A stretch of 64,000 nucleotides of DNA, taken from contig NIVC01000475.1 in the NCBI GenBank assembly GCA_002269645.1, forward strand, positions 62,001-126,000. Direction: 5' to 3'. The notes beneath the pieces are model-generated. The model was not told where the DNA came from. It saw nothing but the letters and a program-made list of their open reading frames with translations, and ran no database searches. The position numbers were made by a program, and so were the translations under genes. Shown piece after piece: positions 206 through 28,771 of this stretch. The stretch's first letter is position 1; every line of letters begins with the position of its first letter. This DNA is from Macrostomum lignano (lineage: Eukaryota).

Positions 206-3200
206 TCAACTTGGCGGCGCTCTCTTTTGAGCAGTTCCGGATTCTGCAACAATGCAAAAGTGTCAAAAGTGTATTTGAAAATTTATTTGAAAAGTCGCGA
301 AGGACAAAACTAAAGTTTGCTAACTTTGAAACTTTCTTAAAAACATGAGAACGTACTTGGCGGTGTTCTGTGGTTCCACGTAGAGCTGTTGAACAGATCT
401 CTTTCCAACACAATGCTGAGCTCCTCACTCTTCCCTCCGTGGCTGTGAACAACAACCGAATATTTCCGCCGCTCACTGACATTTGCAGATCTCCAATCGG
501 GAGTCTTCACCTGAAGTAGGTGCTGGAAGTCAAACGTGTCAAGAGAATTCCAAAATTTAGCTATTTCTTGGTCTAAACACAAAAGCGCCAGACAGTAACA
601 GCATTAGCTGGTAAATTAAAATGCACAAGAGAGAATTTAATATTACATTCCTTAAGGATGGTACAAACGCTACATCCCCATATACGAGCGTAATAGTCAG
701 GCAAAATTTTCCTTTCTGTACTATTTAGATACGAGCGTAGAAGCTAAGCATATTACCTTTTTAACTTCTTTGACGTCGGCAACGAACTCTGTTCGGTTTC
801 CCGTGGTTTCATTGGTTAATGTGAAATGTACCTTTATGTCTTTCTTCTGAATGCCTGAAATTCAAACAGTGTGCCTCACAACTTTTGCATATATTTAGGG
901 CGATCAATTCTGCCGAAATAACCTTGAAACCGAGCGCACCTGTTGTAGGGGTGGTGGTGTGGATCGCCAGCATGCTTCCGCCTTCCTTTGGCACTTCCGC
1001 TGGGTTCAGACAGTCGACCCGAATAGTCTTATTTTCTTCTGAAAAACGATGAAATGCATTGACTAATGGTAGATTATATATATGGCTTCATTACTTGAGT
1101 AATGATCACAGTCACGAGTGGCGAAGCTTAATAAGCTCACTTAATAGCATAGTTTAATAGCGTTGTTAATGCTCAAACGGAAACGATAGTCTAAAGGATC
1201 AGACCCTTGTACGAGTATATATGGGTTCATAATTCAATAATGATCAGCAGCCACGCTATTAAGTAACGCCAGCGGATTGGTTGATTTAGGAAAAACATTG
1301 GATTACGGGACGTTTAGTTATACCATAGGCTAACGAATAGTGATCAGTGAATAGTGATGGTAGAAAATCAGTCACAAAGTCGAAGAGAGGAATTAGAACT
1401 AGAAAAGTGAAGCAAGAGAAAAACGAAAAGCAAAACTCCTTCAATGAATAGGAAGAATCTGCCAGTGGACAGCCTAAATGGAGTCTCGTCAGCAGAGTTG
1501 GATTTTGTAAGTGAACTGAGTGCCGTGAACCGCGGCTCGGATAGAAATCTTGAAGCTGGATTTTATTGTTTCTGACAAGAAAAGCGTAATTGATTTCCAT
1601 ATTTCAGATTTCAGAGACTGCTGATGAGGCTGCTGCTTGAACTGCGAATTATCGAACTGCATATGCATTAACGTTTAGAAAACTTGTGAACTGTCGAATC
1701 CACCCAGTTGCGACCGCCGTTAGCAACAATTACGATTAGGCTACAACAACAACGGAGCAAATTAAAGAAATCGACACCATAAGTGCGACTGTAATGCATC
1801 AAGCTCAAGTGGATATTATCATATTTTTATATATTATTCATAATATATAATATGCCCTACGTTCATATTATGTTATACGTTCACGTCCATATTACTCGTA
1901 TATGGAAATCAAGGTGGCTTGAAAACTTCATTATGAAGTGCCTTAAAAAGATGTTGTCTATATGACAAGGACCGTTATTGACTGACAGTTCAGAACGAAA
2001 CTGAGACACTCACTCTCACTGACGATCGGGTCGCTGAACACAGTGCTCAGCTGCCATTCTCTATCTAATACATCGATGAATAAGAGCGAGAACGCCAGTC
2101 GAATGCGACCAAAGTTTTTGGTTGTGTATTGAGTTGATAGAGCTGTGGGACCTGAAACAGCGCCAAGTTTGTTTGTAAGCCTTCTTAAATTGGGGAGGGC
2201 TGATTAAGTGCCCCAGGAATAAGCGCGCATGTGTATTTTTTTGCACACGTCTGAATAAGCGCGTGGGGAACAAGCGCGCTCGGAAAAATGTTGGAATAAG
2301 CGAGCTGCGATATATCAAAATACTGTAATAAGCGCGCATCGATATTCCTCGATACAGGAATGAGCGCGCAAAGTTTTGTCAAAATACTGTAATAAGCGCG
2401 CATCCATATTTCTAGGTACAGGAAAGAGCGCGCAACATTTTTTAAAAGTCCTGGAATAAGCGCGCACAGATTTTCGTCCAGGAATTCGTCCTTTACGAAA
2501 AGTTTTGAACCGCGACGGTTTCCTTCTATGCACTCCGTAGCTAGAAGTAACACTGAATAATTTGATCGCAGTGTAATCGGCTTTTAAACGCCGCAATTGA
2601 AAGTGTAAGTCATATCAGGCCCACAACCTGATTTGCACGCTCCATGCGCTGGGCACTGTACATTGCACCCATCTCCCCTGCAGCCAATCAGAAGCCGAGA
2701 GAGCCAACTGTGGCCAGTCAGTCAGATATTGAGGCTAAAGGCCCATGCCCTTTGAAAATTTCAGGCCCCTGCAGTCAGTCAGTTAAAATCATCATTTGCG
2801 CGCTCATTCCGAAAGCGGGTAAAATTTTGGCGCGCTTGTTCCAAGTCATGGGAAAACTCGTGCGCGCTTTTTCCTGTATCGATCAAAAATACTGCGCGCT
2901 TATTCCGGTCTGTGGAAAGTTAACTGCGCGCTTATTCAGGTTTTGGTCCGTTCTCCTGCGCGCTTCTTCCCAATCATGTAAAATATGTGCGAAAATGCGC
3001 GCTTGTTCCTGGCGCGCTTAATCTAGCTACCCTTAAATTGGACTCTTTCATCTTTTCAGTTTATAAGGAAAGTGTGATAACTTTATTTACCGAGGCAGAA
3101 GTGTGGAATTGCAGGAGTGAGAAAAGGTGCTCGCTTGAGAGCTGGGCTGTCAACATTTATTAGTTAGCAATGAGGTGGTGGGTGCAGACAGATTCAATCG

Positions 3201-4388
3201 CGCGCATGGGGTGGAGTTGAATAAAAAACCAAACTCTAAAACTCTAAACTCTAAAACCAAATCTCTAAGCCGGTCAATAACAACCTCCACTGCTAGTGAG
3301 TCAACACTTCAGTGCATGCCACCTATAACAAAGTTCATCGTGTCACTATGTCACAGAAAGTAGCAGTTTTTTTCCTGATCACGAAGAACAAAATGCTCAC
3401 AATCTGAAAGCTGAGGAACATTTCTGCGTCTGGCTTCCATGCCGTCTTTGATGTCTTTCTTAGCCTTCCTGAGGACACAGATGACAGCCAGTCGCTCAAA
3501 CCTGAAGAGTATAATCATGGATTATCACTACTTTAATTCGAGAATAAAAACTCTCACTGTACGATCGAATCTGACAATTAATAAATTAAATATTGTCGCC
3601 AACAAATATTAAATTGACGTTTCATGTCAGCCATGAATGTTTACTCACGCGATCTCCCATTCACCACCAGAATCTCCCAATGCATCAACAGACTTATTCA
3701 GCTGGAAATATCCGTTGCTGCAGTGGTCTCCGTGCAGGTAGTACGGATGAGGAGCCTTCTCCTCGGCGCTCACGGTGCACACAGTCAGCTGCAGCTGCGA
3801 GTGCACAGCTGGGTCGATGCCGCTGACGCGAACTCTCACGAAGCTCTTGTTGCCATCGGTGGAGCTCCTGCCGAGCAGCAGGCCGCCAACTCTGCCGCTG
3901 TCCTCGATCTCCGACTCGTAGCGAAATCGGTAGAACCGAGCCGGCTGCTCCTCGATGGTCAGCGAGGGCGGCTGCAGCTCTTTCAGGCTGAGGATCTGGG
4001 GCTCCTCTTGAAGCAGAAAGTCTCTGCCAAAGTCTCTGGCTTCACTTGCTACGATTTCATTTAGAAGCTAAAATCGCATTGACAATTTCGGAAAGAGTTA
4101 TTTCACAGTGCGAGAGGTGGCAGATACGATGACCTGATCTAACTGGTGCCTTCTTCAAAAAGCGAATGAAGAGAAAAATATCGTGGGAGTAATGTTATTT
4201 CTAGATACGAGCTATTATATATATTTATAGCATAAAAACTGGGTTTCGAGCTGCGAGCTCACCGCTTGCGTGCTTGCAGCCGTAATCATTGGGTTCCGGT
4301 CAGGCTCATGAGGCAACGGATACCTAGTATTGCCACCTGCCGACTCATGCTGCCCCTGAGCTGGCGAATGAAGGAGCAGCCCTTGCAT
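206..4388 (-). CDS. Rel/NF-kB-like gene copy 1 (RHD + IPT + NLS-like tail, ~390 aa, 8 coding exons)
   Basis: Manual exons about 4388-4263, 4069-3647, 3502-3405, 2151-2014, 1038-940, 854-757, 522-357, 243-206, all GT-AG with consistent phases. Motifs LTIEEQPARFYRFRYESE, PHPYYLHGDHCSNG, FERLAVICV, RIRLAF, FSDPI, LNPAEVPKEGG, IQKKDIKVHF, HLLQVKTP match Rel RHD and IPT blocks; ends SGTAQKRAPPS*. Confidence 0.85.
1068..1970. mobile_element. ~0.9 kb intronic insertion in Rel copies 1 and 2 (absent from copy 3), containing a possible LINE 3' fragment
   Basis: The homologous intron in copy 3 (about 19025-19095) is only ~70 bp and aligns to both flanks. Minus-strand ORF 1286-1600 ends in a tail-like sequence. 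Family not identifiable. Confidence 0.4.
2192..3032. mobile_element. Non-autonomous foldback/MITE-like DNA transposon
   Basis: Absent at the homologous site in copy 2 (about 9255). Flanked by direct repeat CTTAAATTG(G). Imperfect TIRs GG..GCTGATTAAG / CTTAATCTAGCTACC. Many AATAAGCGCGC repeats in the left arm, inverted (GCGCGCTTATT) in the right arm. Confidence 0.8.
3073..3355. mobile_element. Solo LTR (283 bp)
   Basis: TGTGATA...TGTCACA termini, 5-bp TSD GAAAG (3068-3072 and 3356-3360), absent from the copy 2 intron. Confidence 0.8.
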
Positions 4389-4689
4389 TGTGACCTGTAA
4401 AGTTATCCAGGCAGAATGTTAAAAATGTAGGGCTCATTTTTCTTGGTAAAAGAACTGCTGACATAGAGGAATTTTCCGCTGCTTCTACGTCAGCGCATCG
4501 ACACCCAAAATGCAGCGTTGATGTTATCCGGCACCTAAAGCGCAGAGTACTTGAAGTCTGAACTCCGGAAGCTCGAATCCCTAACCTATTCTCCGCAAGC
4601 GCACGGTGCAGACGGTGAAGCGCGCACTCAAAGCCTGGAACATCACATACTAGTATTAAAGCTGATTTCATCCCATACTTGTTTAGGAT

Positions 4690-5457
4690 TCTCTTCCATT
4701 ATCGCATATCATCAACATCAACATCCCATGTGGCAAGAGTTACGGCGAACGGGCATTTGGCAGACAGCTGCGACTCCCAGTCGTCTCATAATATAAGCAA
4801 GGAGAGAAGGTCTTGTATCAAACTATTAGCTCGAAATTTCCCAATCAGATTGATTTACTCATGAACCAAGGCCGCAACACCGCTCAGGTCCTCGATGGCG
4901 AATCGCTACGCCTAGTAATCACCCACCAGCTCCCCCCATTTCCATTGCAGGATGAGGATGATGGAATTGAAGTCGAGCCACACCGTGGACTGGAAAACGA
5001 AACAGATGCTAGTGATTCTCGTGATCAGGAACCAGTTGCGGTTGCGCAACCACCGCGACGTAGCAGCCGACAGAAGAGAGCCCCCACTCGCTTTCTTGAT
5101 TCCTGAAGGTGCTTAACTACTGTCGACTGTCTGTCTACTCTCCCAAATGCGATACCAGCATCCTCCCCTCTGATGAGTTCCTACTGTTGTTTTTAGCATG
5201 CCTCAATATTCTAGTTCACAGGCTTGTTATCGAAGGGGAGATATTTCAGCCGTAAGGGACTACGATCTGCTCGAACGTCTATTGGCACAAGTTGGGGCTG
5301 CGTCTCGTTTAGGCTTTATATTCGTATATTGAACTAGCAGCCTCTATCCCGTGCCTATTTTGAATTATTTTCTGATTAGAATGCCATGCCAGACAAATAA
5401 ATGTACGATCGAGCTCGCATTTTCTTAAGTTTGCTAACTCAATTAGCTGTCACAACA
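4690..5457 (+). mobile_element. Degenerate Gypsy 3' remnant (integrase tail, PPT, 3' LTR about 5242-5457)
   Basis: Frame-broken integrase C-terminal motifs (LFHYR, GKSYGERAFGRQLR, PRRSSRQKRAPTRF*), purine tract GAAGGGGAGA, LTR-like TATTTCAG...AATAAA...CACAACA. Confidence 0.6.
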
Positions 5458-6183: not shown

Positions 6184-6700
6184 GCATCACCATCAGCATC
6201 ACCATTGGTATTTCCATCAGCATCACCATTGGGATTTCCATTGGGAATTCCATCAGCATCACCATTGGGATTTCCATCAGCATCACCATTGGGATTTCCA
6301 TCAGCATCACCATTGGGATTTCCATCAGCATCACCATTGGGATTTCCATCAGCATCACCATCTGGATTAACCCAGCATCACCACTAGGATTAACCCAGCA
6401 TCACCACTGGATTAACCCAGCATCACCACTGGGATTAACCCAGCATCACCACTAGGATTAACCCAGCATCACCACTGGGATTAACCCAGCATCACCACTA
6501 GGATTAACCCAGCATCACCACTGGGATTAACCCAGCATCACCACTAGGATTAACCCAGCATCACCACTGGGATTAACCCAGCATCACCACTAGGATTAAC
6601 CCAGCATCACCACTGGGATTAACCCAGCATCACCACTAGGATTAACCCAGCATCACCACTAGGATTAACCCAGCATCACCACTGGGATTAAAGTATCATC
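6184..6700. repeat. Compound minisatellite: 24-bp CATCAGCATCACCATTGGGATTTC block, then 21-22 bp GGATTAACCCAGCATCACCACT block
   Basis: Direct tandem repeats; source of spurious MEIPMVML-type ORFs. Confidence 0.95.
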
Positions 6701-7302: not shown

Positions 7303-10300
7303 TCAGCTTGGCCGCGCTCTCTTCACAGCAGTTCCGGATTCTGCAACAATCCAAAATAGTATTTGAAAAGTAATTTTAAAACTGGCGAAGGATAAAGCAA
7401 AAGTTTGCTAACTTTAAAACTTTATCAAATGCAGAAGAACCTACGTGGAATCATTCCGGGGTTCCACTTAGAGCTTAGAAACAGAATGTTGAGCTCCTGA
7501 CTCTTCCATCCGTGGCTGTGAACAACAACCAAACATTTCTGCCGCTCACTGACATTTGCAGATCTCAAATCGGGAGTCTTCACCTGAAGTAGGTGCTGGA
7601 AGTCAAACGTGTCAAGAGAATTCCAAAATTTAGCTATTTCTGAGTCTAAACACAAAAGCGCCAGACAGTAACAGCATTAGCTGGTAAATTAAAATGCACA
7701 AGAGAGAATTTAATATTACATTCCTTAAGGATGGTACAAACGCTACATCCCCATATACGAGCGTAAAAGTCAGGCAAAATTCTCCTTTCTGTACTATTTA
7801 GATACGAGCGTAGAAGCTAAGCATATTACCTTTTTAACTTCTTTGACGTCGGCAACGAACTCTGTTCGGTTTCCCGTGGTTTCATTGGTGAATGTGAAAT
7901 GTACCTTTATGTCTTTCTTCTGAATGCCTGAAATTCAAACAGTGTGCCTCACAACTTTTGCATATATTTAGGGCGATCAATTCTGCCGAAATAACCTTGA
8001 AACCGAGCGCACCTGTTGTAGGGGTGGTGGTGTGGATCGCCAGCATGCTTCCGCCCTCCTTTGGCACTTCCGCTGGGTTCAGACAGTCGACCCGAATAGT
8101 TTTATTTTCTTCTGAAAAACGATGAAATGCATTGACTAATGGTAGATTATATATATGGCTTCATTACTTGAGTAATGATCACAGTCACGAGAGGCGAAGC
8201 TTAATAAGCTCACTAAATAGCATAACTTATTAACGTTTGTTAATGCTCAAACGGAAAGGATAATCATCTATATGACCATGCACTTGTGTATATGGGTTCA
8301 TAATTGAATAATAATCAGCAGCCACGCTATTAAGTAACGCCGATGCTTCTTTGTACCATAGACAAATTGTTTACTGCCAGCGGATTGGTTGATTTAGGAA
8401 AAACATTGGATTACGGGACGTTTAGTTATACCATAGGCTAACGAATAGTGATCAGTGAATAGTGATGATAGAAAATCAGTCACAAAGTCGAAGGGAGGAA
8501 AGAAATAGAAAATAGAAGCAAAAGAAAAGCGAAAAGCAAAATGCCTTCAACGAACTGGAAGAATCTGCCAGTGGACAGCCTAGATGAAGTCTCGTCAACA
8601 GAGTTGGATTTTGCAAATGAACCGAGTGCCGTGAACCACGGCTCGGATAGAAATCTTGAAGCTAGATTTTTTTGTTTCTGACAAAGTTCGAGACTGCTGA
8701 TGAGGCTGCTGCTTGAACTGCGAATTATCGAACTGCATATGCATTAACGTTTAGAAAACTTGTGAACTGTCGCATCTACCCAGTTGCGACCGCCGTTAGC
8801 AACAATTACGATTAGGCTACGACAACAACGGAGCAAATGAAAGAAGTGGACACCACAAGTGCGACTGTAATGCATCAAGCTCAAGTGGATTTTATCATAT
8901 TTTTATATATTACTTATAATATATTATATGGCCTACGTTCATATTATGTTATACGTTCACGTCCATAGTATATGGAAATCGAGGTGGCTTGAAAACTTCA
9001 TTATGAAGTGCCTTAAAAAGATGTGGTCTATATGACAAGGACCATTATTAACTGACAGTTCAGAACGAAACTGAGACACTCACTCTCACTGACGATCTCG
9101 TCGCTGAACACAGTGCTCAGCTGCCCCACTCTACCGAAGATATCGCTGAATGAGAGCGAGAACGCCAGTCGAATGCAACCAAAGTTTTTGGTTGTGTATT
9201 GAGTTGACGGAGCTGTGGGACCTGAAACAGCGCCAAGTTCGTTTGTAAGCCTTCTTAAATTGGACTCCAACAGCAAAAACGAGGCTTCCATCTTTTCAGT
9301 TTATAAGGAAAGTAGCAGTTTTTGTAAAGGATCACGAAGAACAAAATGCTCACAATTTGGAAGCTGAGGAACATTTCTGCGTCTGGCTTCCATGCCGTCT
9401 TCGATGTCTTTCTTAGTCTTCTTTAGGACGCAGATGACAGCCAGTCTCTCAAAGCTGAAGAGTCAATCATGTATTATCACTACTTTAATTCGAAAATAAA
9501 ACTCTCACTGTACCATCAAATCTGACAATTAATAAATTAAATATTGTCGCCGAAAAAAATTGAACTGACCTTTCATGTGTCAGCCATGAATTTTTACTCA
9601 CGTGATCTCCCATTCACCACCAGAATCTCTCAATGGATCAAAAAACTTCTTCAGCTGGAAATATCCGTTGCTGCAGTGGTCTCCGTGCAGGTAGTACGGA
9701 TGAGGAGCCTTCTCCTCGGCGCTCACGGTGCACACAGTCAGCTGCAGCTGCGAGTGCACAGCTGGGTCGATGCCGCTGACGCGAACTCTCACGAAGCTCT
9801 TGTTGCCATCGGTGGAGCTCCTGCCGAGCAGCAGGCCGCCAACTCTGCTGCTGTTCTTCTCGATCTCCGACTCGTAGCGAAATCGGTAGAACCGAGCCGG
9901 CTGCTCCTCGATGGTCAGCGAGGGCGGCTGCGGCTCTTTCAGGCTGAAGAGCTGGGGATCGGCTTGAAGCAGAAAGTCTCTGCCAATCACCTGAGTTTCG
10001 TCTGAAGCTGTTACAGATCCAGAATATTCGAAGTACTCGGCTTCACTTGCTACGATTTCATTTAGAAGCTAAAATCGCATTGACAATTTCGGAAAGAGTT
10101 ATTTCACAGAGCGAGAGGTGCAGATAAGATGACTTGATCTAACTGGTGCCTTCTTCAAAAAGCTAATGAAGACAAAAATATCGTGGGAGTAATGTTACAA
10201 AATCCGATCGCACTCGTAGTTACTTCTAGATATTGTATCTATTTTAGCTAAAAACTGGGTTTAGAGTCGTGTGCTCACCGCTTGCGTGCTTGTAGCCGCA

Positions 10301-10404
10301 ATCATTGGGTTCCGGTCAGGCTCATGAGGCAACGGATACTTAGCGCTGCCACCTGCCGACTCATGCTGCCCCTGAGCTGGCGAATGAAGGAGCAGCCCTT
10401 GCAT
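7303..10404 (-). CDS. Rel/NF-kB-like gene copy 2
   Basis: Same exon structure as copy 1. ORFs 9598-9990, 9028-9291, 7882-8067 and 7425-7655 contain the exons. Ends SGTAVKRARPS*. In-frame indels relative to copies 1 and 3. Confidence 0.85.
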
Positions 10405-12196: not shown

Positions 12197-13000
12197 CCTG
12201 CATCACCATCAGCATCACCATTGGTATTTCCATCAGCATCACCATTGGGATTTCCATTGGGAATTCCATCAGCATCACCATTGGGATTTCCATCAGCATC
12301 ACCATTGGGATTTCCATTGGGAATTCCATCAGCATCACCATTGGGATTTCCATCAGCATCACCATTGGGATTTCCATTGGGAATTCCATCAGCATCACCA
12401 TTGGGATTTCCATCAGCATCTCCATTGGGATTTCCATTGGGAATTCCATCAGCATCACCATTGGGATTTCCATCAGCATCACCATTGGGATTTCCATTGG
12501 GAATTCCATCAGCATCACCATTGGGATTTCCATCAGCATCACCATTGGGATTTCCATCAGCATCACCATCTGGATTAACCCAGCATCACCACTAGGATTA
12601 ACCCAGCATCACCACTGGGATTAACCCAGCATCACCACTGGGATTAACCCAGCATCACCACTAGGATTAACCCAGCATCACCACTGGGATTAACCCAGCA
12701 TCACCACTGGGATTAACCCAGCATCACCACTGGGATTAACCCAGCATCACCACTAGGATTAACCCAGCATCACCACTGGGATTAACCCAGCATCACCACT
12801 AGGATTAACCCAGCATCACCACTGGGATTAACCCAGCATCACCACTGGGATTAACCCAGCATCACCACTGGGATTAACCCAGCATCACCACTAGGATTAA
12901 CCCAGCATCACCACTGGGATTAACCCAGCATCACCACTGGGATTAACCCAGCATCACCACTAGGATTAACCCAGCATCACCACTGGGATTAAAGTATCAT
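12197..13000. repeat. Expanded copy of the compound minisatellite with a 60-bp higher-order unit x5
   Basis: Lines 12241-12540 repeat with 60-bp period, followed by the 22-bp block. Confidence 0.95.
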
Positions 13001-16600: not shown

Positions 16601-19600
16601 AGTGCGACGCCTCTCCCTACGGCCTGGGGGTCGTCTTGACGCACCGCATCGACGACAAGGACTGCGCGGTCGCCTTCGCTAGCCGCAGCCTAACAGCAGC
16701 GCAGCGCGGCTACTCCCAGCTGGACAAGGAGGCGCTGGCCATCATGTTTGGTCTGCACCGGTTTCACCAGTTCCTCTATGGCCGGCGGTTCACCATCGTC
16801 ACCGACCATCTGCCGCTGCTGGGTCTGCTGGGCGAGCGCAAGGGCATTCCGGCACACGCGGCCGCCCGGATGCAGCGCTGGGCCATTCGGCTGTCGAGCT
16901 ACGACTACACGCTGGAGTTCCGGCCGACCGAAAAGCATGCCAACTGCGACTCGCTCTCGCGGCTGCCGCTGCCGCACCTGTTCGAGGAGGAGCCGGCCGT
17001 CAACTCGCTGCTGCTCGACGAGGGCTCCGGATCGGCCATCACGGCGCTGGCGGTGGCGCGGCACACTAGGACAGACGTCTCACTCGGTCGGGTGCTTCGC
17101 TGCTTGCAGACCGGCGCGCCCATCGGCGACGACCTGAGCGACTTCGCCCGGCGGCAGTCGGAGCTGTCAGTCGACCAAGACTGTGTCCTGTGGGGCGCAA
17201 GGGTCGTTGTGCCTACAGCGCTGCGTCGACGCGTGATCCAAGAGCTACATCAGGCGCATCCCGGCATCAGCAGAATGCGCGCCCTGGCTCGCAGCTACGT
17301 GTGGTGGCCCGGCCTCGACGGCGATCTGGAAGCTGCGGCCAAGTCCTGCCGCACCTGTCAGCTCAACCAGCCCGACCCGCCCAAGGCGCCGGTGCAACCG
17401 TGGCCTCTGCCATCCGAACCGTGGGAGCGCCTGCACATCGACTTTGCCGGTCCGGTCGACGGTCATACGTACCTGGTGGTAGTCGATGCTCATAGCAAGT
17501 GGCCGGAGGTCCAGCGGATGCGCGGTACAACGTCGGCGGCCACCATCGCGGCTCTGCGGGAGATGTTCGCGCGCCAAGGCATTCCGCGCACCCTGGTGTC
17601 CGACAACGGGCCGCAGTTCGCCTCCGCCGAGTTCGCCGAGTTTACCCGGGCCAACGGCATTCGTCACGTGTTCTCGGCGCCGTTTCATCCCGCCACCAAC
17701 GGCCAGGCCGAGAGGTTTGTGCAAGTCCTGAAGCGACATCTGCTCAAGAGCGGCCACTCTGACGTCGAGCTTCAGCGACTGCTGCTCAGCTACCGCAACA
17801 CCCCACACAGCATCAGCGGCGCAGCCCCGAGTCAGCTGCTCATCGGCCGTCGGCTTCGCTGCCGTCTGGACCTCCTGGCACCGTCGCTGGCTGACGACGT
17901 CCAACGGCGGCAAGAGCGGCAGCTGCAGGGACGCAGACCAGCGCGCGAGTTTCAGCCGGGTGATCACGTCCTCCTCCGCGACTAAAGCGCCGGCGCGAAA
18001 GCAGGCGACACGCCACGCTGGGCTGAGGGTGTCGTCACGGGCGCCGGCAGCCGCAACTACACGGTTGACTCGGAGCGAGGCCAGCACTTCCGGCACGCTG
18101 ATCAGCTGGTGGCAGCCCGCGCTGACTCCGCCGACACCGTCCATCCGCCGCCTGCTACGGATGACGGCGCCGCCCTGAGTGACAGCGGCGTGCAAAGCGC
18201 TGACGCCGCAGCCGTCGCCGACACGGCCTGCGGGGCGTCATCCGGCACTGACGACGAGCATGCGAGCGGCGTGCGACACGAGCCGGGCACTACACGGCGG
18301 TACCCACTGAGGGTTCGAGGCCCACCTCAGAGACTTCAGCTGTGAAGGGGAGAACTGACTCAGGGGGGAAGTGTGACATTGTGGCGATATGCTAGTGTAT
18401 TTTTATTATTGCAATATTATGCTTTGTGCATTCTTAGTTAGTTAGTATTTGCGTGCGCGCTGATTGGCTAGTGTGTTTCAGTGCATGTGCACTGCGTCGG
18501 GTTGTTTGCGTTTTACGCGTGGCTAGCATGGTGGGGTCTGAGCAGTCAGGCTAACCACCCTCTTTAGTCCTAGGGTTGATGAATAAGAATAAACAAGTCA
18601 TATAAGAGCCCAGTTGTGTGTACTGGCTCTCCACGTTCAACTTTCCTACGCATTCACTACAAGCCTTTAGCTTCAATCTATTACAACATCCTCATATAAT
18701 AGTCAGGCGAAATTCTTCCTTCTGTACTGGAATATAAGCATATTACCTTTTTAACTTCTTTCACGTCGGCAACGAACTCAGTTCTCTTTCCCGTGACTTC
18801 ATTGAAGACTGTGAAATGTACCTTTATGTCACTCTTCTGAATGCCTGAAATTCAAATGAGCGCAGTGCTTCACAAGTTATATCTGTTTCCATAAATTCTT
18901 AATAGTTTTAAAACCGAGCGAACCTGTTGTAGGGGTGCTGGTGTGGATCGCCAGCATGCTGCCGCCCTCCTTTGGAACTTCCACAGGGTTCAGACAATCG
19001 ACCTGTATAGTCTTATTTTCCTCTGAAAATGGTGAAACACATTGACTAATGACCATTTTTGACTGAGAGTTCAGAACGAAACTGAGACACTCACTCTCAC
19101 TGACGATCGGGTCGCTGAACACAGTGCTCAGCTGCCATTCTCTACCGAAGACATCGCTGAATGAGAGCGAGAACGCCAGTCGAATGCGACCAAAGTTTTT
19201 GGTTGTGTATTGAGTTGATGGAGCTGTGAGACCTAAAATAGCGCCAAGTTCGTATGTAAGCCTTCTTAAATTGGACTCCAACAGCAAAAGCGAGGCTTCC
19301 ATTTTTTTCTGTTTATAAGGAAAGTAGCAGTTTTTGTAAAGGATCACGAAGAACAAAATGCTCACAATTTGGAAGCTGAGGAACATTTCTGCGTCTGGCT
19401 TCCATGCCGTTTTCGATGTCTTTCTTAGTCTTCCTGATGATACAGATGACAGCCAGTCGCTCAAAGCTGAAGAGTCAATCATGCAGTATCACTACTTTAA
19501 TTCGAGAATAAAACTCTCACTGTGCGATCAAATCTGACAATTAATAAATTAAATATTCTCGCCGAAAAATATTGAATTGACCTTTCATGTGTCAGCCATG

Positions 19601-20789
19601 AATGTTTACTCACGTGATCTCCCATTCACCACCAGAATCTCTCAATGAATCAACAGACTTATTCAGCTGGAAATATCCGTTGCTGCAGTGGTCTCCGTGC
19701 AGGTAGTACGGATGAGGAGCCTTCTCCTCGGCGCTCACGGTGCACACAGTCAGCTGTAGCTGCGAGTGCACATCTGGGTCGATGCCGCTGACGCGAACTC
19801 TCACGAAGCTCTTGTTGCCATCGGTGGAGCTCCTGCCGAGCAGCAGGCCGCCAACTCTGCCGCTGTCCTTCTCGATCTGCGACTCGTAGCGAAATCGGTA
19901 GAACCGAGCCGGCTGCTCCTCGATGGTCAGCGACGGCGGCTGCGGCTCTTTCAGGCTGAGGATCTGGGGCTCCTCTTGAAGCAGAAAGTCTCTGCCAAAG
20001 TATCTGGCTTCACTTGCTACGACTTCATTTAGAAACTAAAATCGCATTGGCAATTTCGGAAAGAGTTATTTCACAGAGCGAGAGGTGCAGATAAGATGAC
20101 TTGATCTAACTGGTGCCTTCTTCAAAAACTAATGACAAACAAAAATATCCAAAGGACAACTAAAGTAACATGGATATAGGACGCGACACTCACGTTTCCT
20201 GGTGAAAAAGTTTTGAAGGCCAATTTAGACAAATATTTTGCTGAATACTACCGCTTTGCAATTAGCATTTATTTATACTGTTTACAGATTATACACGGCT
20301 AATCGAATCCTTCGAAGAGTTAGAAATGGAGTTTAAGGCATGTAACTAATTTTAGATAGTAAGGCATACCTTGTTGAAAAATGGGTTGCCTAAAGACGCG
20401 AATGCTATTTTATCTTAAAGGGAAATAAAGTTCCAAGGTCCCAGGAAAAAAAGACATTTCCACGTGTATTCATTCAAAAGTGACATTGTTGGGAAAGGTG
20501 GCCTTTAAAACATTTTTTATAGATTTCGAGTGTTGCGTCCTTCTACTTTAGTAGTCCTTGAAATATCCTGGAGTAATGTCACAAAATACGAATGCACTGA
20601 AAGTCGCTTCTAGATATTATATCTTTTTATAGCTAAAAACTGGGTTTAGAGTCGTGTGCTCACCGCTTGCGTGCTTGTAGCCGCAATTATTGGGTTCTGG
20701 TCAGGCTCATAAGACAACAGATGCTTAGCGTAGCCCCCTGCCAGCTGTTGCTGCCCCAGAGCTGGCGAATGAATCTGCAGCTGCTGCAT
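13604..20789 (-). CDS. Rel/NF-kB-like gene copy 3 (Gypsy element in intron 6)
   Basis: Exons read open, from MQQLQIHSPALGQ through RFRYESE to DSGTAVKRARPS*. Transposon insertions fall in introns. Confidence 0.8.
14024..18685 (+). mobile_element. Full-length Ty3/Gypsy LTR retrotransposon, Mag-like
   Basis: 314-bp LTRs (14024-14337, 18372-18685; TG...CA) that look identical by eye, 5-bp TSD ACATC, PBS TGGCGACGAG at 14339, PPT AGGGGGGAAG before the 3' LTR. Confidence 0.97.
14338..17985 (+). CDS. Gag-Pol polyprotein (2 CCHC knuckles, protease, RT, RNase H, integrase)
   Basis: CASCGGAHSRQQC and CHACGKTGHIRKVC, DTGS, FVDD, CDAS/TDH, HHCC zinc finger, IDFAGP/SDNGPQF/NGQAER. The same frame continues past the TAA to 18345. 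Confidence 0.95.
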   Translation: MATSSALGGIPILTANTNIEVWLERLDHYFTCKEVKEEAKVATLVTAIGEEAYTVLRNLCLPAKVSDKSLAQLTKILEDHYAPKPSELAARFRFQRRLQQPGESLAEFVASLKALSSHCNFSASPCEHCHFGGTLDERLRDQLVFGLHSDAYRAKLLEEKNPTFNSLQERVLSLEAVERSSSEMAQKSAAQVAQLRAHQLNKRQGPKPALEGSQQRKGGGNNSRSGVGSSGNTGNTGSGTCASCGGAHSRQQCKLRDAKCHACGKTGHIRKVCRSAKLHFLQEVTPTPPPEASAQLPIFAVQPAGGNAGPTVQLQVNGQPCRFVIDTGSAVTLMPEFLQLMLLPRLSMSPSVAVLRTFTDEQFRPLGQALVSVQQDGQQLQLPLLIVKHGDTALLGRDWLAKLRLDWPSIMAQVHAVHDSEDIGSIVKEFAPVFEDGLGEFRHGQVRLQVSEDAQPRFFKARPVPYALRERVDAELQRMESSGIITAVKHSDWAAPIVPVVKKDGSVRICGDYKLTYNAASKPEHYPLPRIEDLFAKLGGGCKWTKLDLSNAFLQLPLADDSKAFLTINTPRGLFQVNRLPFGITSASAIFQRTLDTLLGDLDAVQVFVDDILVTGSTLQQHKRNLALVLRRLKDAGLRLNKEKCKFFEDSVEYLGHRIDASGLKPLPDRVAAVQDAPAPKDVSQLRSFLGMLAQYCKFLPNLSTVLAPLHQLLAKNTRWSWGPPQQQAFAEAKRLLLESPVLVHYNPNLPLRLECDASPYGLGVVLTHRIDDKDCAVAFASRSLTAAQRGYSQLDKEALAIMFGLHRFHQFLYGRRFTIVTDHLPLLGLLGERKGIPAHAAARMQRWAIRLSSYDYTLEFRPTEKHANCDSLSRLPLPHLFEEEPAVNSLLLDEGSGSAITALAVARHTRTDVSLGRVLRCLQTGAPIGDDLSDFARRQSELSVDQDCVLWGARVVVPTALRRRVIQELHQAHPGISRMRALARSYVWWPGLDGDLEAAAKSCRTCQLNQPDPPKAPVQPWPLPSEPWERLHIDFAGPVDGHTYLVVVDAHSKWPEVQRMRGTTSAATIAALREMFARQGIPRTLVSDNGPQFASAEFAEFTRANGIRHVFSAPFHPATNGQAERFVQVLKRHLLKSGHSDVELQRLLLSYRNTPHSISGAAPSQLLIGRRLRCRLDLLAPSLADDVQRRQERQLQGRRPAREFQPGDHVLLRD
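20150..20560. mobile_element. 411-bp non-autonomous DNA transposon (MITE) in intron 1 of Rel copy 3
   Basis: TIRs CAAAGGACAACTAAAGTA / TACTTTAGTAGTCCTTG, 7-bp TSD AAATATC, absent in copies 1 and 2. Confidence 0.8.
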
Positions 20790-22172
20790 TGTGACCTGTA
20801 CATTTAGCCAGGTGGAATTTCAAACAAGTTACGGCTTGCTTGTTTTCTAGGTAGGCGAACTGCTGCCATGGATGAATTTCCGCCGCCTGTACGTCAGTGC
20901 ATTGGCACACAAAATGCGGTACGTGCAGTCTTTGAATCGCATATACTCATGAACACAACTGACAGCATAAATTCATATCTCAGCATGTATCAAAAAGCTC
21001 TTCATAATTCACTTTTACTTTTTACTTTTAATTTACTTTACTTTCACATAAAAACTTGTCTGCCTGAACTCTAGCGCTGTCCTGACCAGTTTATAAACAA
21101 GTGACTGGAATCTTTTTCAAGTATTGGTAACATCACATGAATTAGCTAGAAAAAAATGCGCACATAATATTGTAAATAGGTTAAACTTACCCACTTTGGA
21201 ATTCCAATGCAATCAAATATTTATTAATTGATAGACAGTTGCAAGTTGCAGACAGGTCGAATACAATATGCAGTGAGTTGGTATCCAAGCACTCTGCTGT
21301 ATTAATGCACTAAAATGATAGTACCTTGTAAAGGCTTTCTAAATTACACTCAATGTGTTGAACAGCTCAACCGAGTGCAGCTTTGCTATTGGCCAGCCAA
21401 GGGAAGAGAAGCTTGATTCATACAGACTTGGTCTCTCTCTTTGATGTCTGCTTACAGATTCAACAAGATTTTAGTTTTGATGCTTTCTTGTACTTTTTGA
21501 AGGGTGTAATTTTAGCATATAGAGTTTCATTCTACTCTGTAGGTTTACAGCTTCTGCACTGGTTAGTGTAAAGTTTCGTGACTGTATGTGTTTGTGACTG
21601 TACATGTTGAAATAATATCTGGCTTTGAGCTCCGGTGCAACACAAACTCGGTGGGCTCTTTTCTAGCGTCTTGTGTATGGTCTGCCTTTGTAGATGGCAA
21701 ACGCTTTGGTGCACATCGCCTTCTTGTTTGAACCATTTCTTGTCACCGCAGAGCTCGATCTGTCGTAGTCATGGCTCTTTCAGGTGACTCATTTAATTAA
21801 GGGGACCATGCAGGTGACTCGTTCAGGTGACTTATTTAGTTTAGGTGACCAGGTGACTTGAACGTTCAGAATATCAGGTGACTCGTTTAGGTAACACATC
21901 CCTGAATCATTCCTATGGCAGTCAGATAACTAAAAAAAATATTTTGAGGATTCTAAAGTCCAAACCCTATTTCATACGAGTACTTTGCAGATACTCATAA
22001 TTTGATTAAATAGGCTAAGGCTGATAAAGCACCTGATTTTATATTGTATAAGTATTATTTGGGGTCAAGTAATTAACAGTAGAGCTACCAAGAGGGGGGA
22101 ATTCCCCCCTCCCCTGACAATTTTTTCTGCGCCGTATTGAAGCAACGCTTGCACTGGAAATTTCAGAAAACG

Positions 22173-22810: not shown

Positions 22811-22984
22811 CCCATGTTGCATTCCAGCTTGTGTCATGCCTTTGATGAAGTTTTCCTTTTGGTTGAACAGAACCATTGAAGCTGTAGTAAAATTGAACTG
22901 GCGTATGCTTGACTTGGCTTATTTTAGCTTGTATTGGTAAACTCTTATGACTTCATCTTTCCTCGTTAAGATTTTCCAAAGAAT

Positions 22985-23455
22985 CATCATTGGGATCTCT
23001 TCCGGGATCATCACTGAGATCTCCTAGAATCTTTATCGGGATCTCCCAGCATCACTAATGTGATCTCTTCCAGCATCATCATTGGGATCTCCCAGCATCA
23101 TCATTGGGATCTCCCAGCATAATCATTAGGATCTCCCAGCATCATTATTATGATCTCCAAGCATCATCATTATTATCTCCCAGCATCATCATTGGGATCC
23201 CCCAGCATCATTATTATGATCCCCCAGCATCTTCATTATGATCTCTCAGTGTTTTCAATGGGATCTCCCAGCATCATCAATGGGATCTCCCAGCATCATT
23301 ATCATGATCCCCCAGCATCATCATTTTGATCTCTCAGTGTTTTCAATGGGATCTCCCAGCATCATCATTATGATCTCCCAGCATCATCATTATGATCTCC
23401 CAGTGTCTTCAATGGGATCTCCAGGATCACTGATGGGGATCTTTCATCATCATCT
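22985..23455. repeat. Degenerate ~22-bp minisatellite GGGATCTCCCAGCATCATCATT
   Basis: Tandem units share the CAGCATCA/TTGGGAT core with the 6184 and 12197 arrays. Confidence 0.85.
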
Positions 23456-23856: not shown

Positions 23857-26800
23857 TCAAGTTTGCTGCCTTGGTCTTTTGCGCGAATCTCGAGTGTCTG
23901 AAAGCGAGTTTTGGAGTAAATAATATCATCTTTATTAATTTTGATGCTACGAGATATGATGTTATGATGATGCTCGTAGATATTTATCTAATGAACCAGA
24001 ATCCCAGATTCCCCAATCCCAGCTTCCCCAATCCCAAATTCACCAATCCCAGATTTCCCAATCCCAGATCCCCCAATCCCATATTTCTCAATCCCAGATT
24101 TCACAATCCAAGATCCCCCAATCCCAGATTCCCCAATCCCAGATTCCCCAATTCCAGATTCCCCAATCCCAGATTCCCTAATCCCAGATTCACCAATCCC
24201 AGATTCCCTAATCCCATATTTCTCAATCCCAGATCCCCCAATTCCAGATTCCCCAATCCCAGACTCCCCAATCCCAAATTCACCAATCCCAGATTCCCTA
24301 ATCCAAGATCCCCCAATCCCAGATTCCCCAATCCCAGATTCCCCAATTCCAGATTCCCCAATCCCAGATTCCCTAATCCCAGATTCCCCAATCCCAGACT
24401 CCCCAATCCCAAATTCACCAATCCCAGATTCCCTAATCCCATATTTCTCAATCCCAGATCCCCCAATTCCAGATTCCCCAATCCCAGATTCCCCAATCCC
24501 AGACTCCCCAATCCCAAATTCACCAATCCCAGATTCCCTAATCCCATATTTCTCAATCCCAGATCCCCCAATTCCAGATTCCCCAATCCCAGATTCCCCA
24601 ATCCCAGACTCCCCAATCCCAGATTCCCCAATTCCAGATTCCCCAATCCCGGATTCCCCAATCCCAGATTTCCCAGTCCTATATGCGCCAAATCTCTAAT
24701 TCCCTATCACAAATTCTCCAAAGCTGGATTTCATGCTCCCCAATTTATTCTAATCCCACATGCCGCATCACCTGCAGAGCCGACATTGCCGCACTCTTTG
24801 CCAAAGAAGACAATTTCCAAATCTTCGCTTTCGAACCCGTTGCTTCGAACTGTCAACCGGCATTTCAGCCGGTCATTTCTGGTGATGGAAGTCATGTCCG
24901 GCGTTCTCACAACCAGCAGATGCTGCAATTAATCATTTAGAAACGATGAAGGTCATATTATAATCAGACAGCTTATCCGCAAAATATCTCTGAGAAAATA
25001 AAACTTGCCTTTTTCAGTTCTACAATCGAACACGAACGAACAAAGTTACGAAGTGAACCCGTCGATTCAGCAGATGCAGATCCGGCACTTGATTGGCCGT
25101 GTAATGTTTGCAGATCAACTTTTATGTCGTTTTTGTTGATTCCTGAAGTATTTTTACACTTACTATGTATAAATCTGTTGGTGGGTGCCTGTGCAGTGAG
25201 GTGCGTGTCGGTGGAGTGAGGTGGGTGTGGGTGGAGTGAGGTGGGTGTGGGTGGAGTGAGGTGGGTGTGGGTGGAGTGAGGTTGGTGTCGGTGAAGTGAG
25301 GTGGGTGTCGGTGGAGTGAGGTGGGTGTCGGTGGAGTGAGGTGGGTGTGGGTGGAGTGAGGTGGGTGTCGGTGGAGTGAGGTGGGTGTCGGTGGAGTGAG
25401 GTGGGTGTGGGTGGAGTGAGGTGGGTATCGGTGGAGTGAGGTGGGTGTCTGTGGAGTGAGTTGGTGTTGGTGGAGTGAGGTGGGTGACGGTGGAGTGAGG
25501 TGGATGCCGGTGGAGTGAGGTGGGTGCCTGTGGAGTGAGGTGGGTGTCGGTGGAGTGAGGTGTGTGTGAGTGGAGTGAGTTGGTGTTGGTGGAGTGAGGT
25601 GGGTGTTAGTGGAGTGAGGTTGGTGTGGGTGGAGTGAGGTTGGTGTGGGTGGAGTGAGGTTGGTGTGGGTGGAGTGAGGTGTCGGTGGAGTGAGGTTGGT
25701 TTCGGTGGAGTGAGGTTGATGTCGGTGGAGTGAGTTGGTTTTGGTGGAGTGAGGTGGGTGTCGGTGGAGTGAGGTGGGTGTCGGTGGAGTGAGTTGGGTG
25801 CAGGTGTCTTTAGACTGAGATGGGTGCCTTTGGGGAAAGCAGACGTCTGTAGTAAAGTAACCAATCAATAAATCAATCTACCTGTCGTTGGCGTCTTGGT
25901 CAGAATGGCCACCAGACTGCCACCAGTCAGGGGCACCTCTGCCGGATTCAAGCGCTCAACCGCGATGGATTTCTTCTGTTCTGAATGGTGAATTTTTCAA
26001 TTAATAGGTAATAAATTAAATCAGATATTTTGTAAAAACTTTGAAATTTTCCCGTAAGTCTTAGCATATACTTGAACATAGATTCCGAGTTCTACATTCC
26101 GAATTCCAGATAACAAGCTCCAGATCCCAAATCTCACATTTAGAAACACAGATCCCGAATCCCAGATCCCGAATCCCAGATCCCGAATCCCAGATCCCGA
26201 ATCCCAGATCCCGAACCCCAGAATCCCAGATCCCGAACCCCAGAATCCCAGATCCCGAACTTTAGATCTTGCATCCTAAATCTCGAATCCCAGATCCCGA
26301 ATCCTAAATCTCGAATCCCAGATCCCGAATCCCAGATCCCGAATCCCAGATCCCGAACCCCAGAATCCCAGATCCCGAATCCCAGATCCCGAACCCCAGA
26401 ATCCCAGATCCCGAACTTTAGATCTTGCATCCCAAATCTCGAATCCCAGATCCCGAATCCTAAATCTCGAATCCCAGATCCCGAACCCCAGATCTTGCAT
26501 CCCAAATCTTGAATCCCAGTTCCCGAATCCCATATCCTGAATCCCAGATCTCGAATCCCAGATCCTGAATCCAAGATCCCGAATCCAACATATGAGTCCT
26601 AGACTTCGAATTCTACGAGCGTAGATACCGAGTCCCAGATCCATAAATCCCAATTACCAAATCCCAAATCCCAAATCACTTAAATTTAACCCCAGACCAG
26701 CAATGAGTCACAGACCATCTTGAACTTACTGTCATCATTAATAGGATCACTGTACACCGTGCTCTGCCACCAGTGCATGCCTCTGGTGTCCGTGAATTGC

Positions 26801-28771
26801 AATGAAATTGCCAGCCGAATCGAACCCATGCTGCGGCTGGTGTATTCCACTTTGGAACTTTCCACTGCTGCACACAAAGTCAAATGCGAGTTTTTAATAT
26901 AGTAAAAAAAGTGGCAACATTACTTAAAGTAGTACAATAATAATAGTACTAATAGACTCACCATCAGGCAGACTGGGGACATTTGCGCGCCTCAGCTCCA
27001 CTGCTCTCTCAATGTCCTTCTGACTTTTCCTGGTCACGCAGATCACGGCCAGGCGGTTGAAGCTGCATTGGTGTTGGGGGGGGGGTCTTGCGAATGCGAT
27101 ATGTAGCTGATGGCTATGATAGTGCTTCGGGATTGGCTTTGAGATTGGCTTTGAGATTGGCTTTGAGATTGGCTTTGAGATTAGCTTTGAGATTGGCTTT
27201 GAGATTGGCTTTGAGATTGGCTTCGGGATTGGCTTTGAGATTGGCCTTGAGATTGGCTTTGAGATTGGCTTTGAGATGATTGGCATTGAGATTGGCTTTG
27301 AGATTGTTTTAGGGATTGGCTTTGAGATTGGCTTTGTGATTGGCTTTGAGATTGGCTTTGAGATGATTGGCATTGAGATTGGCTTTGAAATTGTTTTAGG
27401 GATTGGCTTTGAGATTGGCTTTGTGATTGGCTTTGAGATTGGCTTTGAGATTAGCTTTGAGATTGGCTTTGAGATTGGCTTTGAGATTGGCTTCGGGATT
27501 GGCTTTGAGATTGGCCTTGAGATTGGCTTTGAGATTGGCTTTGAGATGATTGGCATTGAGATTGGCTTTGAGATTGGCTTTGAGATTGGCTTTGTGATTG
27601 GCTTTTAGATTGGTTATGTGATTGGCTTTTAGATTGGTTATGTGATTGGCTTTTAGATTGGTTTTGAGATTGGCTTTGAGATTGGCTTTGAGATTGGCTT
27701 TAACATTGGCTTTGAGATTGGCTTTGAGATTGGCTTTGAGGTTGGCTTTAACATTGGCTTTGAGATTGGCTTTGAGATTGGCTTTGAGATTGGCTTTGAG
27801 ATTGGCTTTGAGGTTGGCTTTAACATTGGCTTTGAGATTGACTTTGAGATTGGCTTTGAGATTGGCTTTGAGATTGGCTTTGAGATTGGCTTTGAGATTG
27901 GCTTTGAGATTGGCTTTGAGATTGGCTTTGAAATTGGCGTTGTGAATTCATCTCAGAGTAACAGCAGATCAAAGGGGGGCCGTAGCCCAGCGGTAGCGCA
28001 GCTGCTCTGGTGTGCCAGCGACCCAGGCTCGATTCCAAGTGCAGTCACATTAATTTGGGGCTAAATTGGAAACTCGGCTTGGCTCTGCTCGTGCAATTAA
28101 CAGCCTTGAGAGCCAACCCCCCAAGGCGCAGTGAAGCGTACATGCCTAACGATAAAATAAAGTTAGGGCCGCTGTACACTCCTGTGTGAGTGTGTGCCTG
28201 CGTATCCGCGCGCTTGTATGCCTGCTCAGGGAAGTCGGCGGAATGGGCAGTAATGCCTCTCGCCGGTTGTGTGCCTATGTCGCTTAAAGTGCGCCAGGGT
28301 GCACACAACCCCCCTGCATCTAAAAAATGAAAAAAAACAGCAGATCAATGAAGCTCACGTGATCTCCCATTCACTGCCCCCAATAGCTGAGTCCACGGTC
28401 TTCTTCAGCTGGAAATATCCGTTGCTGCAGTGGTCTCCGTGCAGGTAGTACGGATGAGGAGCCTTCTCCTCGGCGCTCACGGTGCACACAGTCAGCTGCA
28501 GCTGCGAGTGCACAGCTGGGTCGATGTCGCTGACGCGAACTCTCACGAAGCTCTTGTTGCCATCGGTGGAGCTCCTGCCGAGCAGCAGGCCGCCAACTCT
28601 GCCGCTGTCCTTCTCGATCTCCGACTCGTAGCGAAATCGGTAGAACCGAGCCGGCTGCTCCTCGATGGTCAGCGACGGCGGCTTCGGCAGCGGCTGAGGC
28701 TCGTGCAGAACCAGGATCCGAGGCTGCTCTGGCAGCAGAACGTCCCTGCCAATCAACTGGGTTGTCGTCGC
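23857..28771 (-). CDS. Rel/NF-kB-like gene copy 4 (divergent paralog; 5' exon not located)
   Basis: Exons 28771-28359, 27062-26962, about 26867-26730, 25980-25882, 25142-25009, about 24922-24776, 23897-23857. Motifs FNRLAVICV, SIRLAI, YSDPI, LNPAEVPLTGG, INKNDIKV, HLLVVRTP; ends DTRDSRKRPRQQT*. Confidence 0.8.
24000..24680. repeat. 15-bp intronic minisatellite AATCCCAGATTCCCC
   Basis: Tandem units; source of the PNPRF ORF. Confidence 0.95.
25185..25800. repeat. 20-bp intronic minisatellite GGTGGAGTGAGGTGGGTGTC
   Basis: Tandem G-rich units. Confidence 0.95.
26120..26675. repeat. 14-bp intronic minisatellite AATCCCAGATCCCG
   Basis: Tandem units related to the 15-bp array at 24000. Confidence 0.9.
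27125..27935. repeat. 12-bp intronic minisatellite GAGATTGGCTTT
   Basis: Tandem units; source of the ISKP/LALR/IGFE ORFs. Confidence 0.95.
27974..28335 (+). mobile_element. tRNA-derived SINE (~360 bp)
   Basis: A-box-like TAGCCCAGCGG, B-box-like GGCTCGATTCC, A-rich tail, 13-bp TSD AACAGCAGATCAA (27960-27972 and 28336-28348). Confidence 0.85.

Follow-up and report, generated by a model that had tools for sequence, protein, structure and literature searches.

Which genes occupy the left part of NIVC01000475.1:62001-126000, a 64,000-nt stretch of the Macrostomum lignano assembly GCA_002269645.1 (hereafter the window, placed on its contig through the position of gene g2), and in what sense are they members of the NF-kB/Rel family? 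The initial annotation, made from the sequence alone, proposed an array of four divergent, p50-like genes with a Rel homology domain (RHD) and an IPT domain. We conclude that these genes, g1 to g4, are genuine Rel-homology genes, publicly annotated yet unstudied, and that they probably belong to a larger family of short Rel-homology-region transcription factor genes that is tandemly arrayed and specific to Macrostomum. We class these four as new, lineage-specific representatives of an already known family, showing unusual, domain-restricted concerted evolution.

All four genes lie on the minus strand and, in the spliced models, consist of eight coding exons with intact open reading frames (ORFs). 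The models of g2, g3 and g4 were obtained by matching GenBank proteins and that of g1 by exon-wise alignment to g2, with GT/GC-AG splice sites, so that the four spliceable genes first proposed now have exact models with canonical or GC-AG sites. In window coordinates, these are:

206-4388, minus strand: g1, 394 aa, ending in QKRAPPS-stop; eight coding exons, open frame, canonical splice sites
4388-4263, 4067-3649, 3501-3401, 2151-2014, 1038-940, 854-757, 522-357, 243-206, minus strand: g1 exons
7303-10404, minus strand: g2, BOX15_Mlig001933g2 (P0001), 405 aa, ending in VKRARPS-stop; translation identical to P0001
10404-10279, 10068-9602, 9454-9354, 9221-9084, 8111-8013, 7927-7830, 7595-7445, 7340-7303, minus strand: g2 exons
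13604-20789, minus strand: g3, BOX15_Mlig001933g1 (P0003), 395 aa, ending in VKRARPS-stop; translation identical to P0003
20789-20664, 20035-19614, 19466-19366, 19232-19095, 19022-18924, 18844-18747, 13911-13746, 13641-13604, minus strand: g3 exons
23857-29044, minus strand: g4, BOX15_Mlig024864 (P0118), 359 aa, ending in SRKRPRQQT-stop; translation 100% identical to P0118
29044-29042, 28771-28359, 27062-26962, 26867-26730, 25980-25882, 25142-25009, 24922-24772, 23897-23857, minus strand: g4 exons

Position 206 is the last base of the g1 stop codon, and 28771 is the start of the second coding exon of g4, not of the gene. Genes g2 and g3 have seven GT-AG introns each, g4 has one GC donor site, and internal exons of 101, 138 and 99 nt are common to all four. 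The first coding exon of g4 supplies the ATG alone (29044-29042). We considered whether its initiator Met could come from the M. lignano spliced leader, which ends in AUG, and rejected this in view of an ATG mini-exon, followed directly by GTAAGA, 270 nt upstream at 29044; an ATG mini-exon is also the annotated start of the coding sequence (CDS) in the g4 homeologue and in P0005. Genes g1 to g3 are mutually 83-86% identical, and only g4 (about 62%) is really divergent, which narrows the original description of four divergent genes to one.

Three of the four genes (g2, g3 and g4) thus coincide with GenBank models of the Mlig_3_7 annotation, which was built from RNA-seq transcript assemblies and not by ab initio prediction (PMC5730564). 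These models are unlikely to be choices of a gene predictor, because they include a 4.8-kb retrotransposon-bearing intron and a first coding exon consisting of the ATG alone. A search with a rough concatenation of the conserved minus-strand blocks gave M. lignano proteins exclusively. The proteins are labelled 'hypothetical protein BOX15_Mlig...' at NCBI and 'RHD domain-containing protein' at UniProt, so they can no longer be called undescribed, although we found no discussion of these genes in the searchable literature, gene identifiers included. No AATAAA or ATTAAA occurred within 600 nt of the four stop codons, which is uninformative.

All four proteins passed the Pfam profile RHD_DNA_bind (PF00554) with 52-59 bits against a cut-off of 27, with matches spanning 167-168 of the 169 profile positions (E-values of 3.8e-15, 9.7e-14, 2.5e-14 and 5.9e-16 for g1 to g4, respectively); the absence of such a match, named at the outset as a ground for abandoning the proposal, was therefore not observed. 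HMMER alignments to RelB, c-Rel and p65 cover both domains of the Rel-homology region. A first AlphaFold run, from seven close paralogues, reached a predicted local distance difference test score (pLDDT) of 38 and was usable for the IPT domain only; its C-terminal domain, predicted with moderate confidence, superimposed on the dimerisation domains of NFAT1, p50, p52 and RelB with template modelling (TM) scores of 0.72-0.80 and root-mean-square deviations of 2.5-3.0 A. A second run for the g4 type (11 sequences, pLDDT 71) gave a model that Foldseek matched to the complete Rel-homology regions of RelA, RelB, p52, p50 and c-Rel with E-values of 2.5e-17 to 1e-13, and to the p65 N-terminal domain with a TM score of 0.77. 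The NFAT and TonEBP matches of this model (about 1e-11) were five to six orders of magnitude weaker than that of RelA. A C-terminal dimerisation domain of the IPT/TIG type is thus clear in the predicted fold, though not in the Pfam sequence score.

The DNA-recognition loop is encoded at:

3909-3938, minus strand: g1, RFYRFRYESE
9865-9894, minus strand: g2, RFYRFRYESE
19877-19906, minus strand: g3, RFYRFRYESQ
28619-28648, minus strand: g4, RFYRFRYESE

In p65 numbering, all four genes retain R33, R35 and Y36, which contact bases, while E39 is retained by g1, g2 and g4, with Q in g3; C38 is replaced by Ser in all four, and R187 and R246 by Lys. Contact residues and nuclear localisation signal (NLS) were placed by an alignment with p65 and other Rel proteins, and the same register was also seen in the HMMER alignments to RelB and c-Rel from the PDB. 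The proposed loop RFRYESE therefore holds for three genes, g3 having RFRYESQ, and the proposed Cys-to-Ser change for all four. The insertion reported after the loop exists, but has five residues in g2, g3 and g4 and four in g1, instead of about six.

Each protein ends shortly after a basic, NLS-like motif:

212-226, minus strand: g1, KRAPP
7309-7323, minus strand: g2, KRARP
13610-13624, minus strand: g3, KRARP
23869-23883, minus strand: g4, RKRPR

These motifs align with the position of the KRKR NLS of p65 and are followed by the stop 2-6 codons later. No ankyrin (ANK) match to Pfam was found in the four proteins, and the ANK halves of two class-I proteins, used as tblastn queries, had no match anywhere in the window, be it in or between the genes; where transcript-derived models exist (g2, g3 and g4), they end at the same stop codons. 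Neither is a glycine-rich processing region present in the proteins of g1 to g4. Genes g1 to g3 encode a net-acidic N-terminal extension of 74-89 aa, which g4 and P0005 do not have. The architecture is, as first described, an N-terminal RHD, an IPT domain and a terminal basic motif, with no ankyrin repeats and no C-terminal transactivation tail.

An unusual property of the genes is a block of about 270 nt, homogenised among the copies, that encodes the DNA-recognition core of the N-terminal RHD, with sharp borders within exon 2 in a 30-nt window identity profile:

3711-3973, minus strand: homogenised block of g1
9664-9933, minus strand: homogenised block of g2
19676-19945, minus strand: homogenised block of g3
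28418-28687, minus strand: homogenised block of g4

The encoded segment, PSLTIEEQPARFYRFRYESE...HGDHCSNGYFQ, spans the recognition loop as well as the DNA-binding domain's core. Nucleotide identity within the block was 95-100% among all eight extractable CDSs, two other contigs included, whereas the remaining CDS showed 54-92% identity, depending on the pair. The difference was greatest for g4, whose block was 98-100% identical to those of g1 to g3 (98% with g1 by blastn), while the CDS outside it was about 55% identical, the introns were unalignable, and the exonic and intronic flanks of the block had background identity; in g1 and g4, 266 of 267 nt of the block were identical, compared with 54% of the remaining CDS. 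The proportion of synonymous differences was 0.09-0.11 in the exon-2 core containing the block and 0.72-0.84 elsewhere, and GC content at third codon positions (GC3) was 0.80-0.81 in the block and 0.52-0.60 in the remaining CDS (0.81 and 0.60 in g4). The best explanation of these values is that the segment has repeatedly undergone GC-biased gene conversion. We rejected an artefact of assembly or polishing, since identity in the flanks is only about 55% and individual copies have differences of their own, namely a deletion of K in g1 and an E-to-Q change in g3.

To delimit the family, we mapped it by BLAST with the 270-nt block and by tblastn against the left-flank locus L001. At least seven array members were found on NIVC01000475.1, the four of the window and three more directly to the left on the same strand, so that the proposed array of four was too small:

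6693-8253 of L001, same strand: RHD gene, copy X
10001-12518 of L001, same strand: RHD gene, P0005 (Mlig012767g1), with no N-terminal extension, like g4
14561-18772 of L001, same strand: RHD gene, P0007-type copy Y

Homeologous arrays occur on NIVC01000109.1 (P0006, P0119, P0002 and P0010) and NIVC01001505.1 (a P0118 copy and P0004), in agreement with the known redundancy of the M. lignano assembly (PMC5730564). No further RHD exons were found between 29 and 64 kb of the window. The species also contains a second RHD cluster, PAA90847-PAA90851 (P0011, P0013, P0018 and P0020) with homeologues, whose proteins are likewise short (340-390 aa), tandemly encoded and monophyletic with those of the window, with a loop RFRYE(S/K/T)E and a KRKRP-type motif. 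They differ in being only 27-32% identical to g2, in keeping an acidic/hydrophobic tail after KRKRP and in not sharing the 270-nt block at the protein level.

An exhaustive profile hidden Markov model (HMM) search of 1.84 billion representative proteins supported the proposed lineage-specific expansion. Among the 16 best hits (E-values of 1e-234 to 5e-11), every one whose source was looked up came from M. lignano, and RelB from vertebrates, Dorsal-like proteins from insects and c-Rel-like proteins from lamprey began at about 1e-10. The approximately 12 best non-Macrostomum hits that were looked up were vertebrate RelB/c-Rel-like or insect Dorsal-like proteins, with no other flatworm among them; of the roughly 80 weaker hits, a minority were traced to a source. 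Likewise, all 13 M. lignano RHD proteins were monophyletic in 50 of 50 neighbour-joining bootstraps, with long-branch attraction possible. Sequence comparisons thus support an expansion of RHD genes in the lineage of M. lignano.

To which class of Rel proteins do these genes come closest? PF00554, fold and recognition loop place them in the RHD superfamily. Sequence searches of the PDB listed RelB, c-Rel, p65 and Gambif1, and no p50, p52 or NFAT even at E<=10, while ankyrin-bearing class-I proteins ranked about 85th among the 101 HMM hits. On sequence, the RHDs of g1 to g4 thus appear nearer to RelB, c-Rel, p65 and Dorsal than to p50 and p52, on a long branch, and the label 'p50-like' is not supported. 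The NFAT/TonEBP class fits neither the loop, which is RFRYESE and not RAHYETEG, nor the PDB searches, in which NFAT had no sequence match.

Class II Rel proteins (vertebrate RelB, c-Rel and RelA/p65, and insect Dorsal/Gambif1) gave the best sequence matches outside M. lignano. In common with g1 to g4 they have a Rel-homology region of two domains, Arg, Arg and Tyr as base contacts in the loop (plus Glu, kept in three of the four genes but not in g3), a basic motif of the NLS type right after the IPT domain, and the fold (E-value of 2.5e-17). They differ in having a C-terminal transactivation region and the loop Cys, replaced by Ser in g1 to g4; the latter also carry the 4-5-aa insertion after the loop and a TPTT insertion in the IPT domain, are only about 20% identical, score below threshold for RHD_dimer, and occur in tandem arrays.

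Class I (p105, p100 and Relish) does not fit, either by ankyrin repeats or by RHD similarity, which is weaker than to Rel proteins. Mature p50 and p52, and processed Relish, do resemble g1 to g4 in fold and in the architecture of RHD, IPT and NLS; however, the M. lignano genes have no ANK/IkB-like half, glycine-rich region or death domain, and encode the short form directly, with no processing. A directly encoded, RHD-only protein with no ankyrin repeats is also found in the sea anemone Nematostella. Its gene, Nv-NF-kB, is single-copy and assigned to the NF-kB class, and the animal has IkB as a separate protein and a Toll-like receptor (TLR) pathway. It contrasts with the multi-copy array of M. 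lignano, a species with no TLRs.

Within the phylum, a 2024 survey reported no p50/p105 in Platyhelminthes, which is not among the phyla listed with c-Rel (PMC11432056). A 2026 paper described seven highly divergent RHD factors in Schmidtea mediterranea, of which one was lethal upon knock-down, with no immune link (PMC13563047), qualifying the statement that NF-kB is missing in planarians. Compared by description, the Schmidtea proteins resemble ours in coming from a flatworm, in their long branches and in being hard to assign to NF-kB classes (PMC13563047), and any relationship between the two sets would be distant.

One alternative, put forward in the initial annotation, is that the genes encode constitutive p50/p52-like subunits with no activation domain, acting chiefly as repressors or competitors at kappaB sites in an immune or stress module. 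The proteins do end 2-6 residues past the NLS-like motif, the more distant paralogues P0011, P0013, P0020 and P0021 keep an acidic/hydrophobic tail after KRKRP that the window subfamily has lost, and g4 and P0005 lack the N-terminal extension as well. Nevertheless, we consider this alternative doubtful, given that in sequence the proteins resemble RelB, c-Rel, p65 and Dorsal, not p50 or p52, that neither a glycine-rich region nor any sign of an ANK-bearing precursor is present, that the net-acidic extension of g1 to g3 could activate transcription, and that TLRs are absent from M. lignano (PMC8609888). Repression of the p50 type is possible as a sub-case, but the class assignment does not fit the sequence.

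Several observations weigh against a family of functional transcription factors. There is no gene call for g1 in the GenBank record (loci L001 and L002), and RNA-seq reads are unable to separate this locus from its near-identical homeologues. The Pfam profile RHD_dimer (PF16179, cut-off of 28.3 bits) was matched only below threshold by g1 (E = 0.0027) and g2 (E = 0.047) and not at all by g3 or g4, and a four-residue insertion lies within the strand-loop region used for dimer contacts; consequently, dimerisation is not assured. Copies need not all bind the same site, because g3 has the E39Q change and the loop of copy X, RFYGFRYESQQASYH, has Gly in place of the first base-contacting Arg. The absence of TLRs mentioned above counts on the same side. 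Finally, pairwise Nei-Gojobori estimates of the ratio of non-synonymous to synonymous substitution rates (dN/dS) were 0.9-1.26 among g1 to g3, at dS of 0.06-0.10, and the p-distance between g1 and g2 was 0.064 in exons and 0.063 in introns. With dN/dS near 1 and exons diverging as much as introns, the youngest copies could be largely redundant.

These last values are the basis of what we rank as the main rival, birth-and-death decay, in which the older lineages (g4 type, P0005 type and second cluster) are functional while g1 to g3 are redundant and drifting to pseudogenes, their ORFs still open mainly through youth. The missing annotation of g1, the recent long terminal repeat (LTR) element inside g3 and the damaged recognition loop of copy X, adjoining the window, would also be expected under decay, as would the apparent constraint on the g4 type, which differs from its homeologue by four synonymous and one non-synonymous changes. 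For g1 to g3, dN/dS was 0.6-0.8 in comparisons with P0002, P0004 and P0005, which are homeologous or older copies, and about 0.33 in comparisons with g4, where dS is about 1 and saturated at such depth.

However, the pattern of indels is difficult to reconcile with decay. Over 1684 nt of intron, g1 and g2 differ by 16 indels, 11 of which have lengths not divisible by three, whereas over 1.17 kb of exon they differ by three indels, all of lengths divisible by three; no frameshift was thus observed where about 7.6 were expected from the intron rates (P ~5e-4). Moreover, g1 to g3 contain no premature stop (an absence with a probability of 0.02-0.07 per comparison), every splice site is intact, g2 and g3 have transcript-derived models, and the recognition block is actively homogenised. 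We therefore judge decay unlikely. The young copies have been held open while their amino-acid sequence was free to change, which fits relaxed or diversifying selection better than dead genes. A lack of expression combined with dN/dS near 1 had been offered as a ground for dropping the proposal; only the dN/dS half of it was found, in g1 to g3, since transcript models exist and frameshifts are excluded.

The remaining alternative concerns the block, whose second strand carries long ORFs (88-153 aa) over exon 2 in all four genes:

3624-4064, plus strand: antisense ORF over g1 exon 2
9544-10005, plus strand: antisense ORF over g2 exon 2
19766-20032, plus strand: antisense ORF over g3 exon 2
28430-28798, plus strand: antisense ORF over g4 exon 2

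We did not accept these ORFs as real genes: their frame is the codon-aligned one, and they probably arise from codon usage as a side effect. A second function at the DNA or RNA level (antisense ORF, structured RNA or small-RNA target), in place of conversion, might seem favoured by these four overlapping ORFs and by an identity that reaches synonymous sites, but is highly improbable, because antisense stops in the codon-aligned frame need the sense codons TTA, CTA or TCA, a trivial effect, the predicted folding of the block is not significantly better than that of shuffled sequences (z = -1.28), a GC3 of 0.80 fits GC-biased conversion, and conversion typically leaves tracts of this length with sharp borders.

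Thus, a Macrostomum-specific family of short Rel-type factors is the explanation we favour, and it predicts the following mode of action. The proteins would form homo- and heterodimers through the IPT domain, enter the nucleus by means of the terminal basic motif and bind kappaB-like DNA sites, all with the same specificity, which recurrent GC-biased conversion of the recognition block would maintain. The N-terminal extension, the remaining RHD, the IPT domain and the tail diverge near-neutrally, with frameshifts and stops excluded, and paralogues would differ in their surfaces for dimer partners and cofactors, and hence in output. Because no inhibitor or processing signal is present in cis, the proteins may be constitutively nuclear, or else controlled in trans or transcriptionally. 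Members with the acidic N-terminal extension (g1 to g3) may activate transcription, and those with none (g4 and P0005) may compete or repress.

The large intron 6 of g3 (4835 nt) contains a full-length retrotransposon in antisense orientation to the gene:

14024-18686, plus strand: Ty3/gypsy LTR retrotransposon, 4.66 kb
14024-14338 and 18372-18686: its LTR pair, 315 bp each, 100% identical
14338-17985: its gag-pol ORF, 1215 aa, intact, with protease, reverse transcriptase, RNase H and integrase domains

Identical LTRs and an intact gag-pol ORF suggest a very recent insertion. The GC content of the element (58-65%) exceeds that of its surroundings (about 42%). Heat-shock elements such as those described for some M. 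lignano LTR families were absent from the LTR and from the window as a whole. A second expanded intron is intron 3 of g1, 1249 nt long as compared with 132-133 nt in g2 and g3, owing to about 1.1 kb of inserted sequence (~2152-3400) in which ORF fragments are internally repeated.

Minisatellites, the LTR element and split coding blocks give the window a eukaryotic appearance. Most of the long g4 introns and intergenic spacers are filled with minisatellites with periods of 12, 14, 15, 20, 22-23 and 60 nt:

24000-24679, 25180-25800, 26120-26586, 27131-27942, 22983-23429, 6254-6691, 12206-12992: minisatellites

One of them, at 23038-23357, contains six copies of GGGAGATCCC and one of GGGGGATCCC. 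The kappaB-type site GGGGAATTCCCC, a perfect palindrome, is found at 22096-22107, 1.3 kb upstream of the g3 ATG, and two kappaB-like decamers (29291-29300 and 29440-29449) lie 250-400 nt upstream of the ATG exon of g4. The enrichment of kappaB-like sites in the window is due solely to the minisatellite, their count otherwise being at chance level, and autoregulation through such sites is only hinted at by the sequence.

The right part of the window holds other features:

30850-31310 and 32882-33353: inverted duplication, 91% identical, GC-rich (50-59%)
30865-31482, minus strand: Gly/Ala-rich ORF in the inverted duplication, with no Pfam match
32680-33348, plus strand: Gly/Ala-rich ORF in the inverted duplication
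34750-35277: reverse-transcriptase fragment
41634-41927 and 42257-42829, minus strand: two exons of a gene for a lipoyl(octanoyl) transferase/ligase, matching Pfam LplA-B_cat (E = 4e-10 and 1e-19)
45023-49778 and 53991-58726; 49477-52635 and 57920-61081; 52657-53817 and 61555-62713: segmental duplication, 98.5-99.4% identical, built around long satellite-like arrays
62805-63089, plus strand: EF-hand-pair exon, probably the N-terminal part of a calcium-binding protein running past the window

In surveys of NF-kB evolution, Platyhelminthes figure as a phylum with no such family (PMC11432056), and divergent planarian RHD genes are a recent finding (PMC13563047). M. lignano now offers a flatworm model capable of transgenesis with a large, expressed Rel-like family, no ankyrin partners in cis and no TLRs, so that the function of flatworm Rel proteins and their upstream pathway become directly testable. 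We can also envisage, speculatively and against the odds, a private combinatorial Rel network in a basal flatworm, with at least a dozen RHD-only subunits encoded in arrays, no TLRs and no recognisable class-I NF-kB, in which conversion fixes the DNA-reading core while selection diversifies the dimerisation and N-terminal surfaces, as in fast-evolving immune families. If true, such a network would combine many dimers with one DNA specificity and different regulatory outputs, wired to some upstream pathway. The domain-restricted homogenisation itself, with 95-100% identity in the recognition block and as little as 54% elsewhere, would represent a natural example of constant DNA specificity combined with diversifying partner surfaces.

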